Assembly: GCA_001655205.1 (NCBI GenBank)
Contig: LPNZ01007846.1
Span: 1-41,306, forward strand
Direction: 5' to 3'
Length of the DNA stretch: 41,306 nucleotides
DNA from: Lenisia limosa
Taxonomy: Eukaryota; Protista; Breviatea
How positions within the stretch are numbered: the first letter of the stretch is position 1; each line of letters starts with the position of its first letter. Shown piece by piece: positions 6,601 through 38,397 of this stretch. The translations under genes were made by a program, and so were the position numbers. Below the pieces are notes generated by a model, which saw nothing but the letters and a program-made list of their open reading frames with translations, did not search any database and had not been told where the DNA came from.

Positions 6601-9600
6601 TGCAGTCTTCGTCAGCTCAGGTCGGTGCCAATTTACCGGTTCCTCGCTGAATGCTTGTTTATTTCTTTAGACTGAAGCTGAAGAGTACAATCAAAACAGA
6701 GAACAATTGTGAGCTTCTGACTTATTTTTGGATTTTGATCACTGGTCATTAACAAAGTAGAATTGAGATGCTTCGAGCCGATATTGCCAAGCAAGCTGAA
6801 GTGGCTGTCGACTTACAATCAAGTTGGACAAACCAAGGTTTATTCTCACCTTTCAGCCTCGGACTTCCAACTGACACAACTGCGATCAAGTGAAGCATCA
6901 GTGTTGTGTTTGCAGACAAGACTCTCCAGTGCCCAAGCAACCGAAGCCGATCTGAGGGCCACCATTGCTGTCACATCGCAGTCGCTCGGTGCGTGTAACT
7001 CGGTCTAAACAGAATACTCATTGTTGTATTTCACTCATTTTCTCCAGATTGAAACCCATAGTCCTTACTGTTTCCAGAATCCACTGTAGAGGAAATGCAA
7101 CGACAGAACCAGAAGCTTAGCAAGGCGGAGGAAGAGCTAGTTAATGCTCGACAAGAATCCGAGCAGCTTCGAAAGCTTGCAGATGAGTGTAAGCTATTGT
7201 CGGGATAAACCTGGTGCAAGAAGACTTGGGTGACAATTCAGCGGTTGAACTCAAGGCTGCCAATGACAGAATTGCAGACTTAGAGGCCCAGTTGACCGGT
7301 TTGAGGGATGAAAGGGTATATGAAGGGTATTGTCATGATTGCACTGACATGATAGTCCCAACTGAGCTTGAAGCCAAACTCAGTCAGGCCGAAGCGAAAC
7401 AGTTGGAAGCCGAAAGCACAGCCGACTCTCTTCGCACTCAGCTGGCCAGTATGCTGCTTGCATCCACGACTGACCATTCAGGCATTGCAGATCTCGGTGA
7501 CCCCTTGAAGCTCACTCAGGTGGAAGAGAAGTTGGAAGCATCAGAGGAGGAAGCATCCTTCCTTCGAAGCCAAATCGACAGCTTGCGAGACACCTGCACT
7601 GACATCAGCCTGAAACTGAAGACTGCTGAGGCGACAAATGTCGAAAGTGCTACGTTGATAGCTGAACAATCGGCCAAATTAGCGGCTGCACAGTCGGAGC
7701 TTGACAGTTTTCCTGATATTAAGGACCGCCTTCAGCTGACAATTGATGAGAACAACGCGCTTAAAGAAGATCACCAGAACCTGGTAACACGTTTCACTAC
7801 TGCCACTACAGAGCTGGATGATCTGCACTCTGACAAGCTAGAGGCTGACAGTCGGATTGAGGAGCTTCAGCAACGTCTGGATGAAATCACCCGGACCGGT
7901 GAGATGCTGGACTCGAAAGAGGAAACTATCCAGTCTCTACAGAGCCGTCTCCACGCTGTGCAGGATCGCGCTTTGTCTGCAGAGGAGCTAGCAACCAATC
8001 TCGAGGCTGAGTTCTGCTCAGCTCAGGAGGACATTGCTTCATTCCTAACCACGAAGCAGCAGCTGATCTCTGGTCACAATGAGACTGTCAGCGGCCTCGA
8101 ACAGACTATTGAGAACCTTCGAGCCGCAAATACCGCTGAACTTTGCGATCTCAGAGATCAGTTATCGGTTCGCAACACCAAATTAGACACTGCGGCGGCG
8201 GAGATTCGAATGGCCAAATCCTCGGTTGATGCTCTTGAATCGGCGTTGACGCAAAACAACGCTCACTGTGCGCAGTTTGAAAAAGAACATAGGGAGGAGT
8301 ACAAAGCCCTTCAGGAAGCAAGTTTAGAGGCAGTTAACAATGTCAAGGCGGACCATAAGAACTGCCAGTCTGAGCTGACTAAGGCAAAACAAACCATCCA
8401 GAGCCTGGAGCAAGACAAGGTTTCCTTGACAGAAACCCAGAAGACACTGGAGTCCACACTAACGAAGCTGGCGCATCAACTTGAAGAACTCGATGACAAG
8501 TTCATCAAGGTCAAGTGCGAGGTTTGCTCAAAAGGATCATAATTTGTTCCCTGTTCAAATATGTAATATAATATGCTCATCTCTTTTAGGCTGAGACTCT
8601 TCATAATGAAGTTGTGTCTTTGAGGGGTGACAACGTATCTCTACGAAAAGACCAGAATAACCTGCTTCAAGGCGTAAGCGTATCAGATGTACTGATTGGG
8701 TCTTATCATACAGGTAACTTCCAGTGAGCAGTCAGCCATTTCCGCTCTCCAGCAGTCTAGAGAAGCGGAAGAGAGTATCCTGGCTAAAGAGAAAGAAATT
8801 TCTGACCTCAGAAGCAAAATTCATTCCTTAGAAGAGGTCTGCTTTTTCGTTTCTCAAATTCACTTCGGTGTTGTTCAGTGATCATAAGATCATATTATAT
8901 CCTTTATAAGGGTGATGGATGATAAATACATGAACCTTTTTTTATCATCTCATCATGAGCACTTGTACTGACGAGCTTAGTCCCACGCTGCATCCAACCT
9001 CGAGGCATCCCTTCGCAGTGCCTCCGACGGCAGTGGCAAGGTGTCAGCCATGCGTGCCAAGGTGGCGCTTCTCGAGGCAAACATTGAAGTACGCAACAAA
9101 AAGACCAACATGAATTCACCTTACAGACGTTGATATTGGAGAAGTCAAAGATGACTGAAGAAGTCCAGGACAAGGACCAGACCATTTCGGACCTACGAAT
9201 CGTCTTGGATAACTCTCTTGCAGGGGCAAAGTAGGTAAAGGGCATGCATAACGAAGGTAAACGATTAACTCACCTATTAGCCCAAAAGACGTGCAGCCCC
9301 CTCTGACTCTCAAATTGCCAGAAGTTGCACCGGAGGTAGTGTTGCCTCTTTTGAACGACGACAACTCACAATGTCAGAACCCGATAACAACAGTCTTACC
9401 AATGCTGCAAGACCTGAGCAAAACACTTTCCATTCTCCTTGTCATGTGCCAGAAGAAGAAGGACATCACCGTCAACCTCAAGGCTCTCAGGACCAAAGTC
9501 AAGGTCCGACCCGGCCGTTGTTTCGTATTTACTCTCCACAGACCACAATTGGTGATATCAAAGGAACGCCAACATCCACACCTTTGACGTCCCCTGTCGC

Positions 9601-30967: not shown

Positions 30968-31780
30968 GTATTAGATAAGTGTGGAAGAATGGTTTTATTG
31001 TTTAATGTATCAATGTATAAAAAACAAAAAAAAATGAGACGTCCTTCACCCAAGACCAGCTTAGGACGCGATTAATATTACTATTTCATATTATCATATT
31101 ATAAATGAACCAGATAGGTTCTGGAGGTTACAGAAGAAGGACGAAAGGAGGAATATATGCATTTTTTATTTTATATCTATATCCCTCCTAGCCGTGACCG
31201 TTTCGCCTCTTTTCTGTTCGGTTGTACCATTCCTCCAAGTCCTCGGCCTCGGCTCGACCGCGGTCGGTCCGCCGAACTTGGCTTGTCTAAATATGAGGTG
31301 CACTTGCTTTTGAACGTAGATGGATGACCCTGGAAGACCCCTCTATTTTACAAATAACTTGACGCCTGGGTGGCCCAGGGAACTCTTACCAATTCTCTGT
31401 ACGCCACCTCGCGCAAACTTCACGCCACTTTTTCGGTTAGTTTAGACCAAGAGCTCGGAGGAATACGCCCGTACCGGGGACTAACCAACGTTACAGCACA
31501 GGTTTTTTCCTTTTTTGGTAAGTTAACATCCTCCTCAACCTGAACCTGAAACTGCCCCCTGCCTCCACTGTTTCTTGTGAATATATTATAACAAAATACA
31601 GTTTCATCAAGGGAAAGAACAGCTTCACCCTTTTCACCACCGTTACCTGCCCCCACCTCTCTTGTTCTTGAACCTGAGGGACTGGGGCTCCACCTTGAGG
31701 CTAGTATCTTACTGTCTGGTTTGGAAGTAAATATCCACTATCTCTTGACATTTTTACAACTAACGTAACCATAAAACACC

Positions 31781-34700
31781 ATGGACATTCAGCTCAACTC
31801 ACCATTGGAATCTGAGACGTATTCTCCTCGTAACCTCCCGAAATTGGTATTCGTTTCGTGAACTTCTTTTTTTGACTTGTATTTTCAGGACACTGGACTC
31901 GATGATTACAGCAAACTTGTAAGCGGTGTCTTCTAAAATCCAAACTTATGCAGAGTGCAGAGATGAGAAAATAGTGTGTTCATAAATGTTATTTCATAAA
32001 CACAAACGGTAGTATCACTAAAGAAGTCAAGAATTGTATTTCCACCAGTTACATTTAGGATGAACTAGTAGGCTCCCCAGAAATATCAAGCCCTTCAAAA
32101 ACCAAAGTGGGTACTCTTCAATACGGTTGCGTGGTACACTGTGTTTGATGCCACTGATACGCAACAGAATCTCTCAGCACGCCATCGGACGTTTAATAGT
32201 CCTGGAGGAACTTTGAGGAGGCTCAGCGCCTCCCCTGCAAGATCACTGTTTGTCATATAATCTTTTAACTTTTTAGATTATCCAAATCTTCGCGTACAAC
32301 AAGCCGTAATCCCAGCTGGAAATTAAATACGTTGGTCAGATCTCGATTTACAACCTTAAGCAGCCCCGAATCCAGAGTGTCAGATACCGTCATTAAAGCG
32401 CTTTTGGAAGTTGAGACCAAACACAAGTTTGCCGAGTGGAAAATGAACATCTTTAACTACATAGACTCGAAAAAGCGAGGAACGCTCTGACTTTCAGTTT
32501 TCCAACAATTCTTCTTTTGATTAGTGCTATGTGTAGGAATTCAAACACTGGTTAATGTTCAGGCCTTATTGTTATTGGATTGTTCATCTCACGTTCATCC
32601 AAAATGGCCTCGGTTTGTTGTCAACGCGTTATTACCCTTAAGTTTTCTCCGATCTTCATGCCCCTCATTTTATTCTGTGATGCAATTAGTTTCTCAACTC
32701 TGCTCGCTACCTTTGGTGAGAAAGCCTGTTTTATAACTTGTTAGGAATTGAAGTTATGGAACAGCAAGTATGGGCGGCAAGACATCATCTTTGTATTTCA
32801 ACAATCATTCGCCTTTTCATGAGATGCATTCGAATGTTATATGTCTACAGGTATTGAAAATCCATATTACATTACTCTGTAGCCCATTTATCTTTGGATC
32901 TCAATGGGGACTTGTTCCGTATTTGATACTAGTAAGACACATTCATTTTGCATTATTGTTACATTTCAGGCGCAATGTGGCGTACGTTCGTTTTCATCAA
33001 AAGTTTTGAGTCAACCAGTTGTCAAAAAGAAGGAGGCTGTACCAAGAGGTTTGTGCCAGCATCCAACTGTTGTATCATTTTATTCTCTTTTATAAAACAG
33101 AAATTCCACAAAAGGCAAGTTTCTTTGATAGCCCTCCGGAGAGTTTACCCAGACCTGCTTCCCATTATAGTACGCTTTGCGTCAAGTAGTAACTCAAAAA
33201 TGCCAGAAGTAGTACATGTTCATTTTAGAATTGTCGAAAGTAAACTAATCACATCAGCTTCCACCCTGACTCCTTCCATCACTGAACTTACCAAAGCCAA
33301 GTTGGCAACATTCTTTCAGCAAGTTCCTGCCAAGTATTTGGGCATTCTGCATTATTCACTATTAACATTGCAGTCGGCAGTACCTTATTGCCCTGATTAT
33401 GTTTTTTCTCAATACCACTCTGGTGTGTCCCATCTTTGCATGGTGGAATCCTTCCTGTATGTTTTTAAACGAATTTTATTGTTTAGCAATTGTGCTTCAT
33501 GCACTTCCATTTGTGGGAGTTGCATTATCCATTTATCTACATGTGTTTTCATTTCAATATCGATATAAAAACAACCTATGTCAGAATATGGTGTTTACCA
33601 CAGTTACTCTTGAAGTAAGTCAAACTTTTGACTCCTCATTTTTAGTTCTTTGAATGTCTCGCAGCCCTCTGTCTTCCTACAATAATGCCTTCGTCTACTA
33701 TCGCTGTGGTGGCCTGTGTCAATATGTTGAGGAGTTTTACTATAGCAGTTCCTCATCTTGTCCTGTCATTTAAAAGACAAAGCCGTCTTACTGAGCAGGT
33801 GTGGTAATGACAATATTGAATGCGACTTGCCTTTCAGGGTAATACAATTTAGATTGAAATCCGCTCCCTGGTCACGCAGCAGCAGTTCAAGGACTTGAAT
33901 AAGACCAAAATTGCTGCCTCTGAGACACTTAAAGAATCCAAAACTAATACATCGCTTTTGGAAAAGAGGTCAAGTCTTTTGGTATGTTCGGAAAGTGGTG
34001 TGTAAATTTGAGTAAATTACCATAACTATAAAGGTCCATATGGGAGAGGAAGTCCGAAGTACCCTTGAACAAGGTTAGTTGTGTTGTCATCTGCATTTTA
34101 CCTATCTATAATATATGACAGGAATACCAAAAGAGCAATTTACTTTTCAGTTTTGAACATCATAAGCTTTCTTCATGATACGCCTCTCCTTGCTGAACAG
34201 CACAATTACCTTCAAGGGGTTGAAGCATGCTCTGGTCAGTCTTTGGTTGACATCGCAACTGCACTTTACTAACCATTTCAGAGCGTATTTTGAGTCTCAT
34301 AGACGATGTGATTGTGTTTCATTCAGCTGATGTCGGAGATGTGAGGCAGAACGCTCTTATTATTGACTATTTAGCTAACATCAGAAAACGTGATGTTTAA
34401 CACTACCGGTCTTATTGAAGAGGCTGTTTCCTTGATAGCACCTTTGTCCAGTGTTTGTCAATTGTCTACAATGCATGTCACTTGTGTATTATTTATCACA
34501 CCATAACACTCACGCTCCAGCAAAAACTTGTTGACATAGGCTGGCTTGTTGATTCTAATGTACCGCCAGCTATGATCGGCGATGCTGCAAAGGTAATTGT
34601 CATTTTTTCACTTCTAAAAATACCAAAGCCGTTACCCTCTTAGCTTCGAGCGTGTTTGGAAGCCCTAATCAATAACGCTGTGCAATTCAGTCCAGAAGGG

Positions 34701-37700
34701 GGTCGTATTTTGGTGAGATTTTGCAATCTTAACTCTGGAGATTCATGTCAAAATCGGTTCGGCACCAAAGGAACCTTTACAAGTCATCATAGACATCGCA
34801 GATGAAGGACCTGGCATTCCTCATGAAGAGACCAAGGTATTAGTGTTTAGTTTAAGTAACAGTTTAGACAATTTTTGAGCCCTTTTCAAAAGGCCGTGAG
34901 AATCATCTGCAGGTTTGCTGCTTGTTTGTCTAAAATGTACAGACTGGCCATGGGTTGGGTCTTGCTATCTGCGACCAGTTTATGAAGATCATGAAGGGTA
35001 ATTTGAAGTAGGCTATTTATCTTGTTAATTCTTAGGGTGTGGACACATTTGGGATGCGGTTCCATATTCTCACTAAGCGTTCCTCTCACTGAACATGAAA
35101 GAGTAAGCCACTGTTGTGTTTGACTTTTAGGGGCAAGCGGAATGGAACAATTCGATGAGACGAGATCGAAGGAAAATGGAAGGGTAAGAGGCAAGGTTTT
35201 ATTATCCTACAGAACGAGCGTTTTCATTGTTACCAATTGGACGGACCTCTATGCTCAATACGAATCCATTCTCTCAGAAGTTGGATGTCGGTATGTGTGA
35301 AATGAAGGTTGCTGATGTAACTAGCGTGGCCGGAGCCTCAACAGTTCAAGAAGCTTACTGTGCCATTGGCTCAACTCTTACCAATTCACCGTAGGCAAGT
35401 TGGTGTTATTGTAAGAGTGCTAAGCATTCAAAAAATCTCACTTAGAAGAAATTACACTGTCCTCATCATTGACATTAATCCCTTGACCGCGACGAGTTAC
35501 CCGGGTAGGAATTAATTCTCTTTCCTTTTAATGACAATGTTCAGAAACCCAGAGTCTAGTATCCAACATTGAAGCCATGATGCACGACCCTGGAATGAAG
35601 CGTTTACACATCGTGGTGTCTGGTCCAAGTTCAACGTGCAACAACATCCACCGCGCAGGGATTCGTAAGTCGTTTATCTTACATCGGCATTCTAACTGAT
35701 CAGCCTTCCTTGTCAAGCCTTGCACTAGGTCGCAGCTCTTAACATGTGTATTTGAGTCCTCGCAGAGGAATCGAAATGTTGGTTGGACATCCAACTGACC
35801 TGTCTTTGGTTGTATTTTGGATTGAAATGATTGTTTAGATTGGACTGAAGCCTAAAGCCGATTTTAAGACATCAAAGCTCTGGGGGTCTGGAGTGTCCCC
35901 AATTGTACCAGTCCTCTCATCAGGGTTGGTTTACCATTCAACTTTTCTCATTCGAGTCTAACTTATTAGAAGTTACCCCGTTACTCCACATGAGCTGTTG
36001 CAACGTAAGCTGGTTTGGTATGACAACTAACTATCTTCAGAGCCCAAAGCAGCAGAAGACACCCCAACGTTTTTGGGTCTTCCTCCAACTCCTGTTGCAG
36101 TAAATGTGGGCTGGGCACGAGTTTCTCTCATCGAAGACAAGTTTCACCCATGCTTAGATCGCCACTGCCCCTGCCCCGAGTTCATACTACAAGAGATCCT
36201 TCCGGACAAGCACTACGTGAGGAGAGTTTAATTTGTCTTGCATTTGGGCATTTATTGTTACTATTCAGCTCATCTGTCAATACGTCACCATCTTATGAGG
36301 CTGGTTCAGGGAAGTTCAAAGCAAAACAGCTGTCACTTTCAGAAGAGGTGGTGAAACTCTTGATGTGATTATTCTTTAGATTCATAGACTAAATTCCCCG
36401 TTCTCGGTTTGAAGTGGTGTATTACTCATGTACTATTAACTTTAAAACAACTTCCTCCATTATGTATTAGCTATCAGGAGAGGATGCTTTAGTGGCCGTG
36501 TCAATACCAGATTACGCTGAAAGCTCTGAAACCTTCCAGGAAATAAAGAAGCTCATCAATAGCGTAAGGTATTCTCTCACTTTAACGTTCAGTGCGGGCG
36601 CAAATGCAAGTTCTTCAAGTCCCATATTGCTGCAATTCACCAAAACTTCTCTGCTACAGTATTTGTAAGTGGAGGCTAGTCATAAATCTGTTACAAAGCA
36701 CATGTCTTTTATTGATTATTGTTTGAATAACCCTTTCAGGTTGGAGTGGAAATATTGACTAGAGGTCAGCTGATTGAACTTGCTGGTAAGGCATTGCTAG
36801 TGGATTTGAAGCTTCAGGTGAGGCCTCCCAAGCCGGACGAGACGGAGTGCGAATTGCCATCACGCTGACAAACCACGTGCCACAAGAGGTCGTAGCTGCA
36901 AATGCCTTGTAGGCTCTTACCTATTTTCACTCTTCAGCCATGAGATTCTTCCGTGGCCAGTTGACACCAATGTGTTCCATGCAGCTTTAGTGTATGCCAC
37001 CCTCTTGCCAAATTACACTGTAGTGTTGCTGCTAATACCGATTCAAAAGAGAGAAAACTCTCCAACTCATCATTTTCATCGGGTTGGTCTGGATTAAGCT
37101 TTTCATGAGATAACCAACATAGGCCGGGGGAAATCCAGTCAAAGTGATGAGGTTGGTTAACGCGGTTTATATATTATTTGACTATTTAGCTTGAAAGAGA
37201 ACACGTGTTACTTGTGGAGGATAACCAGGTGCGAGATTGTGTAACTGACTTGATGATAGTTTCATGAAACCACGTTACTATTCAGATCAACTCAAGAATA
37301 GGCGCAGCAGTTCTACAGCGCCAAGGTCTCCAGGTAACAGTCTTGGAATCTGATTGTCTAGGTCGAAACCGCAAGAAATGGGAAGGAAGCCCTTGCACTT
37401 CTCACTAACCAGAACAACAAATACCTGTGTGTCCTCATGGTGAGAGACTTGTAATTGTAACGCTCAAGGACGTTCATATGCCAGTCATGGACGGCCTGAC
37501 ATGTACACAGAAGCTCCGTGAATACGAAAGAAACAACGGACTCCAACCCACCAGTGTTGTGGCCTTGACAGGTACGGTTTTTTTATGGTACTGTGAACTA
37601 ACTCTGTTTAGCAAACAATGTGCCTGGTCAAAAGAGCTTATGTCTCCAAGCGGGGTGTGATGACTTCATGAGCAAACCGCTCGACTACTCCAAACTACTC

Positions 37701-38397
37701 ATTGTGGGTGTTTGTTTAACGTTTGAGTAATATACAATAGTTGTACGGATTAACACGCTTGTAGGTGGTGAAGAACATTGAGGAAAGGCGACTGCGAACA
37801 CACATTGTGCCCTTTGACCAGGATATTCTCAACAAACTCTCACCACCAACCAAATCCGCTGATAACCCGATCTCAATCAAAACAATGGTTAACAAGTGGG
37901 TGAAGTTGTCCGTTACATTCTAGACAATTGGGCAGAAGAGGCAGTCTGCCGATCCTGTCATCAGACAACAGGAAAATGTCACTTTCGCCTTTGTCAAGGG
38001 ACAGTACCCACCCGCTCAAACAGTAAGTAGCCCATTCGCCTTACTCTCAAGAATGTCTCCTCATTCGTCCAAACGCTCATCACCGCTAAATCCATAGTGG
38101 GCGACGGGGGGGGGGGGGNNNNNNNNNNNNNNNNNNNNNNNNNNNNNNNNNNNNNNNNNNNNNNNNNNNNNNNNNNNNNNNNNNNNNNNNNNNNNNNNNN
38201 CTTCAATGTCACCAAAGAATCAACCAATAATTGTGAGCCCAACTGACATACTAACATGCAGGGCTCACCGCTTGGTCATGCCATGTCACGAAGGAACTCC
38301 GTCTTGACCGGTTGGCTGTGGTTTTTGGTGCTCTTATTCAGTAGTTACTCGATCTCCATTGGAGGGCACCACCCTGCAACATTCGACTTCGGAGTAG
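31781..38397 (+). CDS. Membrane-bound hybrid histidine-kinase-like protein (multi-TM, degenerate HisKA, HATPase_c, degenerate receiver(s), canonical receiver); probable pseudo-histidine kinase
   Basis: HisKA-like RSSLLVHMGEEVRSTLEQ and EQHNYLQ...ILSLIDDVI. HATPase: GDAAKLRACLEALINNAVQFSPEGG (N box), DIADEGPGIP (G1), IFEPF (F), TGHGLGLAIC (G2), GCGSIF. Terminal receiver: VLLVEDNQIN...VLMDVHMPVMDG...VVALTA...GCDDFMSKP. The true 5' end may lie upstream (~31.1-31.7 kb), and the 3' end crosses gap 38119-38200. Confidence 0.9.
38119..38200. other. Assembly gap near the 3' end of the histidine-kinase-like gene
   Basis: N run directly after a G13 tract (38106-38118). Confidence 1.

Follow-up and report, generated by a model that had tools for sequence, protein, structure and literature searches.

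A predicted membrane-anchored kinase-like protein with glutamate in place of the phospho-acceptor histidine in the breviate Lenisia limosa

Lenisia limosa is a free-living breviate, on a deep branch near animals and fungi. The stretch of DNA considered here, called the window, is its contig LPNZ01007846.1 (assembly GCA_001655205.1, 41,306 nucleotides, positions 1 to 41,306 of the forward strand), and one kinase core and one receiver only are contained in it. With a probability of roughly 55% the core is assigned to a real, transcribed gene encoding a membrane-anchored HisKA-type kinase-like protein in which the His of the H-box has been lost and which acts as a pseudo-histidine kinase. The protein is probably real, His-less, kinase-like and functional, and, as its sequence is read here, a canonical His-to-Asp relay cannot start from the acceptor position. 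Since the core and the receiver look constrained and the exons downstream of the core are expressed and spliced, a functional His-less protein accounts for the data better than does either an artefact or a pseudogene in decay.

The core was scored with a hidden Markov model (HMM) of the DHp and CA domains built from ten E. coli HisKA kinases, and the receiver with a REC HMM built from E. coli response regulators (eight were retrieved, plus RcsD). Exons were concatenated before being scored against these E. coli-derived profiles and Pfam was run on single exons only, for which the H-box exon and its neighbours are too short; a 20-residue stop-free stretch around the H-box exon gave no Pfam match, the query being too short. 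Expression data come from a single polyA RNA run, used as assembled contigs placed on positions 32300-38100. The kinase core comprises eleven exons at 33853-35102, which form a single open reading frame (ORF) with GT-AG introns of 28-77 nucleotides (nt), and its parts are as follows.

33853-33981, + strand: exon of the coiled-coil signalling helix leading into the start of the H-box (...LEKRSSLL), where the HMM alignment begins; it ends in phase 0.
34034-34073, + strand: H-box exon, VHMGEEVRSTLEQ (+g), placed by sequence, HMM alignment, deletion, shuffle and splice-path tests.
34037-34039, + strand: His codon cat, at -3 from the acceptor position, read from the sequence.
34046-34048, + strand: Glu codon gag in the column of the phospho-acceptor His, S-H-e-l-R-t-P-L being aligned to G-E-E-V-R-S-T-L.
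34151-34234, + strand: exon carrying the remainder of DHp helix 1 plus the hairpin, (V)LNIISFLHDTPLLAEQHNYLQGVEACS, by HMM alignment.
34282-34340 and 34375-34452, + strand: two exons with DHp helix 2 (X-box) and the CA start, separated by a 34-nt intron, by HMM alignment.
34521-34592, + strand: exon QKLVDIGWLVDSNVPPAMIGDAAK, the part of the CA domain preceding the N box, by HMM alignment.
34644-34746, + strand: N-box exon (LRACLEALINNAVQFSPEGGRILVRFCNLNSGDS) with the Mg-ATP Asn at 34674-34676, HATPase_c profile positions 6-31 and an alternative donor at 34712.
34784-34836, + strand: G1-box exon with DEGPGI at 34801-34818, by Pfam and HMM alignment.
34868-34912, + strand: F-box exon (TIFEPFSKGRENHLQ), by HMM alignment.
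34943-35102, + strand: G2-box exon, with GHGLGL at 34946-34963, and the last CA exon (35036-35102), with a 28-nt intron between them, by Pfam and HMM.

Split into codons, positions 34034-34073 read gtc cat atg gga gag gaa gtc cga agt acc ctt gaa caa g, which is translated as V-H-M-G-E-E-V-R-S-T-L-E-Q plus one base. The exon upstream of it ends at 33981 with ...tca agt ctt ttg (residues ...E-K-R-S-S-L-L), followed by gtatgt, and the intron 33982-34033 (52 nt) has the borders GTATGT..AAG. On the other side the intron 34074-34150 (77 nt) has the borders GTTAGT..CAG, and the split codon, g before it and tt after it, is completed by the exon starting at 34151, from which reading continues as (V)LNIISFLHDTPLLAEQHNYLQGVEACS. 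In a preliminary description of this DNA the 40-nt exon was said to be in frame with both of its neighbours, and both the residues and the codon coordinates given there (cat at 34037-34039, gag at 34046-34048) are correct. Because of its length of 40 nt, skipping the H-box exon breaks the frame, hence the exon is needed.

The gapless alignment to the HisKA H-box, claimed in the same description, was reproduced with the DHp+CA HMM, in which the profile kseflatvSHelRtPL stands against RSSLLVHMGEEVRSTL and the whole spliced core scores 138.6 bits (E 1e-44, Z=1; profile positions 17-247 of 251). Glu falls in the column of the invariant His, and the Thr-Pro of the H-box is replaced by Ser at +4 and Thr at +5, also as described before. 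The consensus S-H-E-x-R-T-P-L-N thus reads G-E-E-V-R-S-T-L-E, with five non-consensus positions (G for S at -1, E for H, S for T, T for P and E for N) and with the acidic residue at +1 kept. Removal of the H-box exon lowers the score of the core by 14 bits, and its 13-residue peptide outscores all of 2000 shuffles of itself and 1999 of 2000 random 13-mers. The HisKA phosphatase motif, defined as E/D-x-x-T/N directly after the His (PMC12963549), is absent after the acceptor site, where E-V-R-S has Ser instead of Thr or Asn.

It could be argued that the Glu is an artefact, i.e. that the gene model or the assembly is in error and that a His does stand in the H-box of the real mRNA or genome. The H-box exon has no RNA over it, and the sole agreeing DNA contig may be the source of the window itself, both of which would allow such an error; nevertheless, the region is free of gaps and low-quality runs (the nearest run of N is at 38119), and the change from CAY to GAR needs two substitutions, therefore a single-base error cannot explain the Glu. 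An alternative exon with a canonical H-box was also looked for. The pattern H-[ED]-[ILVMFT]-[RKS] occurs in no + frame of 31000-38110, and 3633 stop-free, in-frame splice paths through 33930-34200 were enumerated (TG, GG and CG acceptors were allowed), among the twelve best-scoring of which none places His at the acceptor position. The model with 34034-34073 ranks 2nd of the 3633, 1 bit behind a top path which has poor GTCTTT..GAG signals and merely deletes SLLVHMGE. An artefact of this kind is accordingly held to be very unlikely. As a separate observation, a one-base shift at 34061-34073 gives ccc ttg aac aag, that is P-L-N-K, resembling the canonical P-L-N of the H-box, where T-L-E-Q stands in the frame in use; this could be a coincidence or what is left of a former frameshift that was later compensated, and the shifted frame cannot join the next exon in the present gene.

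Another candidate for the acceptor is the His at -3 (34037-34039), about one helical turn upstream, and if it were phosphorylated the protein would still be a histidine kinase. The CA domain is intact and His stands at a position where the seven E. coli H-boxes compared have N, G, T or A, which would suit this proposal. However, helix geometry puts the -3 position about 60 degrees round the helix and about 4.5 Å along it from where the acceptor normally lies, and the acidic general base would sit at +4 and not at +1. To our knowledge a natural HisKA domain with a shifted acceptor is without precedent, and none was met in the literature consulted, so that only a very slight chance is given to it.

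Outside the H-box the core is well preserved. With leave-one-out profiles it scores 131-144 bits, in the range of EnvZ (141.6) and AtoS (151.9) and about double the score of the degenerate pseudo-kinase RcsD (58-73 bits). In the preliminary description intact N, G1, F and G2 boxes were reported, and all four nucleotide-binding boxes do align to the profile (INNAVQF, DEGPGI, FEPF and GHGLGL respectively); Pfam HATPase_c has matches in three exons in a row and in collinear order, covering profile positions 6-31, 37-54 and 72-90 with 12.6, 13.5 and 15.4 bits. From the intact boxes together with the score of the core it can be said that the degeneration appears confined to the H-box. The junction between the N-box and G1-box exons scores 9 bits higher as 34746/34784 than as 34712/34771, and with RNA contigs lying only further downstream either of them may be the one used.

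A core of this quality raises the possibility of switched chemistry, in which the CA domain would use ATP and phosphorylate Ser, Thr or Tyr on the protein itself or on a substrate. None of the ATP-binding boxes is impaired, the core equals genuine kinases in its preservation and several Ser/Thr residues adjoin the site (R-S-T). Moreover, CSK of mosses and higher plants has Glu at the His site, keeps the kinase fold and shows altered phosphoryl-group chemistry, and in CSK of green algae the site is occupied by Tyr (PMC2677595). On the other hand, PsmA (SCO4009 family) of Streptomyces venezuelae, a hybrid histidine pseudokinase with Glu for the H-box His, is without autokinase activity (PMC12963549), and DivL of Caulobacter crescentus is inactive despite keeping all of its boxes (PMC4211667). 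The sequence analysis gave no positive evidence for switched chemistry, and it is considered improbable. Little chance is given to the broader proposal that the breviate independently made a different enzyme, be it a Ser/Thr/Tyr autokinase or one with the acceptor His moved to -3.

The gene extends on both sides of the core, and the following parts are distinguished.

32465-33798, + strand: predicted polytopic membrane (sensor) region with about 6-8 hydrophobic 19-residue segments, from an ab initio splice path.
35131-35777, + strand: about 150 residues after the CA domain, with introns 35505-35544 and 35665-35703 confirmed by RNA contig 35408-35743.
35778-37023, + strand: linker on a continuous ORF path, from an ab initio path with 11 introns, all with YAG acceptors and 9/11 with GTNNG donors.
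37190-37730, + strand: canonical receiver in 5 exons (REC HMM 86.9 bits, E 5e-29).

The receiver has the acidic pair E-D, the phospho-Asp at 37469-37471, a Thr and the Lys at 37674-37676; its motifs LLVEDN, VLMDVHMP, VVALTA and MSKP fall on the corresponding positions of the REC profile from E. coli, Pfam Response_reg matches the exon 37469-37570, and the first in-frame stop after it is at 37728-37730. Exons downstream of the core are present and correctly spliced in the polyA RNA run. Joints in the RNA confirm the introns 37083-37122, 37152-37189 and 37229-37285, and a loose end of an RNA contig reveals the 28-nt intron 37334-37361. The ORF path recovers unaided the RNA-confirmed 32-nt intron 36992-37023. 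The RNA depth over the gene is very low (2-6).

The protein had previously been called a hybrid kinase. A canonical receiver is indeed present some 2 kb downstream of the core, and the two can be connected by an uninterrupted ORF path whose splice signals are good; no transcript contig bridges them. On the splice path it is probable that the kinase core and the receiver make up one hybrid protein. A degenerate pseudo-receiver at 35131-35777, with TN for DD, was considered as well and rejected (REC HMM -4.4 bits, hhalign 3% probability), and Pfam found no match for the exon 35547-35663. The exon model at 35103-35445 is uncertain, for the RNA contig keeps the 38 bases at 35408-35445, which the curated model places inside a 55-nt intron (35391-35445); these bases are either retained intron, an assembly artefact or a sign of a wrong exon model. 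The same RNA contig begins with 24 loose bases largely repeating 35489-35504. No Pfam family was found for the N-terminal membrane region 32465-33798.

The gene might also be an expressed pseudogene, a non-functional paralogue which lost its catalytic His recently and is now drifting. Five non-consensus positions in the H-box speak for decay of this kind, as do the depth of only 2-6 and the fact that no orthologue was found that would show constraint. They are opposed by eleven core exons and five receiver exons in which the reading frame and the splice signals are preserved and neither a stop nor a frameshift occurs, by CA motifs and receiver residues that are fully conserved, and by a leave-one-out score equal to that of genuine kinases. 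Decay is therefore regarded as unlikely.

For the pseudo-histidine kinase preferred here the following mode of action can be proposed. The acceptor His, the Thr at +4 and the helix-kinking Pro at +5 would have been lost, with the DHp fold and a complete CA domain kept. The loss of Pro may matter because this residue makes the functional bend of the DHp helix (PMC4211667). By analogy with DivL and PsmA, the DHp/CA dimer would be a module that acts, by binding or through its conformation, on a partner kinase, on a phosphotransfer protein or on a response regulator. If the receiver is part of the protein too, it would accept phosphoryl groups that stem from the cell's other kinases, and the protein would thereby be a target or modulator of a phosphorelay, not its source. 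Among the conceivable roles a non-catalytic one like that of DivL and PsmA is ranked as the most likely, followed by an acceptor switch like that of CSK; both places in this ranking are inferred. The preliminary description named four mechanisms, namely a scaffold or heterodimer partner, a phosphomimetic-like locked site, a switch to Ser/Thr kinase activity and a shifted acceptor at -3, and the evidence from the sequence does not tell them apart.

Of the systems compared, PsmA shares with the present protein a hybrid-kinase layout (here probable), Glu for His, the lack of the E/D-x-x-T/N motif and a receiver with a conserved Asp. It differs in being a bacterial, cytoplasmic and polar protein whose N-terminus binds DivIVA, whereas the protein described here is eukaryotic with a predicted polytopic membrane N-terminus. 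The function of PsmA does not depend on the receiver Asp, nor on whether the His is restored; in the Lenisia protein E-x-x-S follows the site. CSK is likewise a eukaryotic descendant of a bacterial-type kinase in which the conserved His is replaced by Glu and the kinase domain is kept, but it is plastid-targeted, descends from cyanobacterial Hik2, has no receiver and works with partners other than response regulators, and no kinship is implied. DivL resembles the present protein in its His-less DHp with the other histidine kinase boxes kept, and its own role is that of a binding and sensor module for a phosphorylated response regulator; it differs in having Tyr and not Glu, Pro kept at +5 (Thr here), PAS sensors and no receiver (PMC4211667). 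RcsD of E. coli is also a membrane protein resembling a histidine kinase and lacking the phospho-His, and it works inside a phosphorelay; nevertheless its core is strongly degenerate (58-73 against 131-144 bits) and it signals via HPt, while no HPt is seen here. In canonical hybrid kinases of eukaryotes a sensor is followed by the coiled coil, HisKA, HATPase_c and a C-terminal receiver (PMC6324907), an arrangement which the present protein probably shares. Their His is phosphorylatable, whereas Glu stands here, and the receiver lies unusually far downstream, at about 600 residues, if one gene is concerned. In a survey of histidine kinases across eukaryotes breviates were not included, and the nearest lineage sampled was Apusozoa, with 11 kinases (PMC6324907).

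Several points weigh against a functional pseudo-histidine kinase of the kind proposed. Intact boxes are no proof of nucleotide binding, as DivL keeps all of them and yet binds ATP weakly (PMC4211667), and the mechanism is inferred by analogy. RNA contigs are placed only at 35408-35743 and 36944-37335, thus none covers the H-box exon and none bridges 35743 to 36944, where the link between core and receiver is an ab initio splice path. Finally, exhaustive, word and metagenome searches found no orthologue or paralogue.

In the exhaustive protein search the 34-residue peptide of the N-box exon gave 133 matches, all of them to large repeat proteins, with no kinase relative among them. These 133 proteins (249-2411 residues) match only residues ~11-24 (NAVQFSPEGGRILV) of the 34644-34745 peptide, up to six times each; in a motif scan none of them had an H-box motif and two had a G2-like motif. 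They probably form a repeat family unrelated to kinases; a short exon of a histidine kinase makes a poor query. Word searches with the 210-residue ORF 32936-33565 and with the 95-residue membrane ORF 33366-33650 yielded no sequence besides the window's own ORF P0001, or none at all. The metagenome scans found no match, either to the membrane exon or to a degenerate H-box pattern in which the acceptor could be H, Q, D or E. The DNA record of the contig is ENA ERZ3820729 NODE_92, which carries prokaryote-style ORF calls only; as the collection has no other calls for this contig, no spliced protein of the gene is on record there. A polyA metatranscriptome and a DNA-like assembly that includes the whole stretch both belong to a single study of 2016.

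As regards the gene model as a whole, all 23 curated introns of 33853-37730 end in AG and are 28-77 nt long (median about 38), and 18 of the 23 have GTNNG donors. The spliced junctions seen in RNA contigs within 32300-38100 belong to GT..AG introns of 32-57 nt. A stop-free gene model built by dynamic programming was too greedy, reading through the H-box region, and was replaced by homology-guided curation; a codon-usage frame scan was dropped as an aid to the gene model because its signal was too weak. Directly 3' of the gene there is a run of G and then an 82-base gap of N (38100-38200). Elsewhere in the window, the longest stop-free stretch is found at 7193-8539 on the + strand (449 codons, coiled-coil-like), which is unusual where most exons are shorter than 150 nt.

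His-less kinases which keep the fold are already established. Subfamily-II ethylene receptors and phytochromes belong to them, and Ser/Thr/Tyr-type chemistry has been reported for these proteins. With the kinase fold apparently kept and a residue other than His at the acceptor position, the predicted Lenisia protein is a pseudo-histidine kinase in the same sense, and what is new is an example in a lineage where such proteins were undescribed. If functional, it would be a protist, non-plant addition to the short list of His-less kinases with the whole fold. The same change from His to Glu in plant CSK, in Streptomyces PsmA and here hints that Glu may be a preferred replacement. A further consequence of the protein is that two-component repertoires counted by domain matches in protist genomes include non-canonical members. 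By itself the protein opens no new mechanism, and its practical value is that it could be compared biochemically with CSK, PsmA and DivL.

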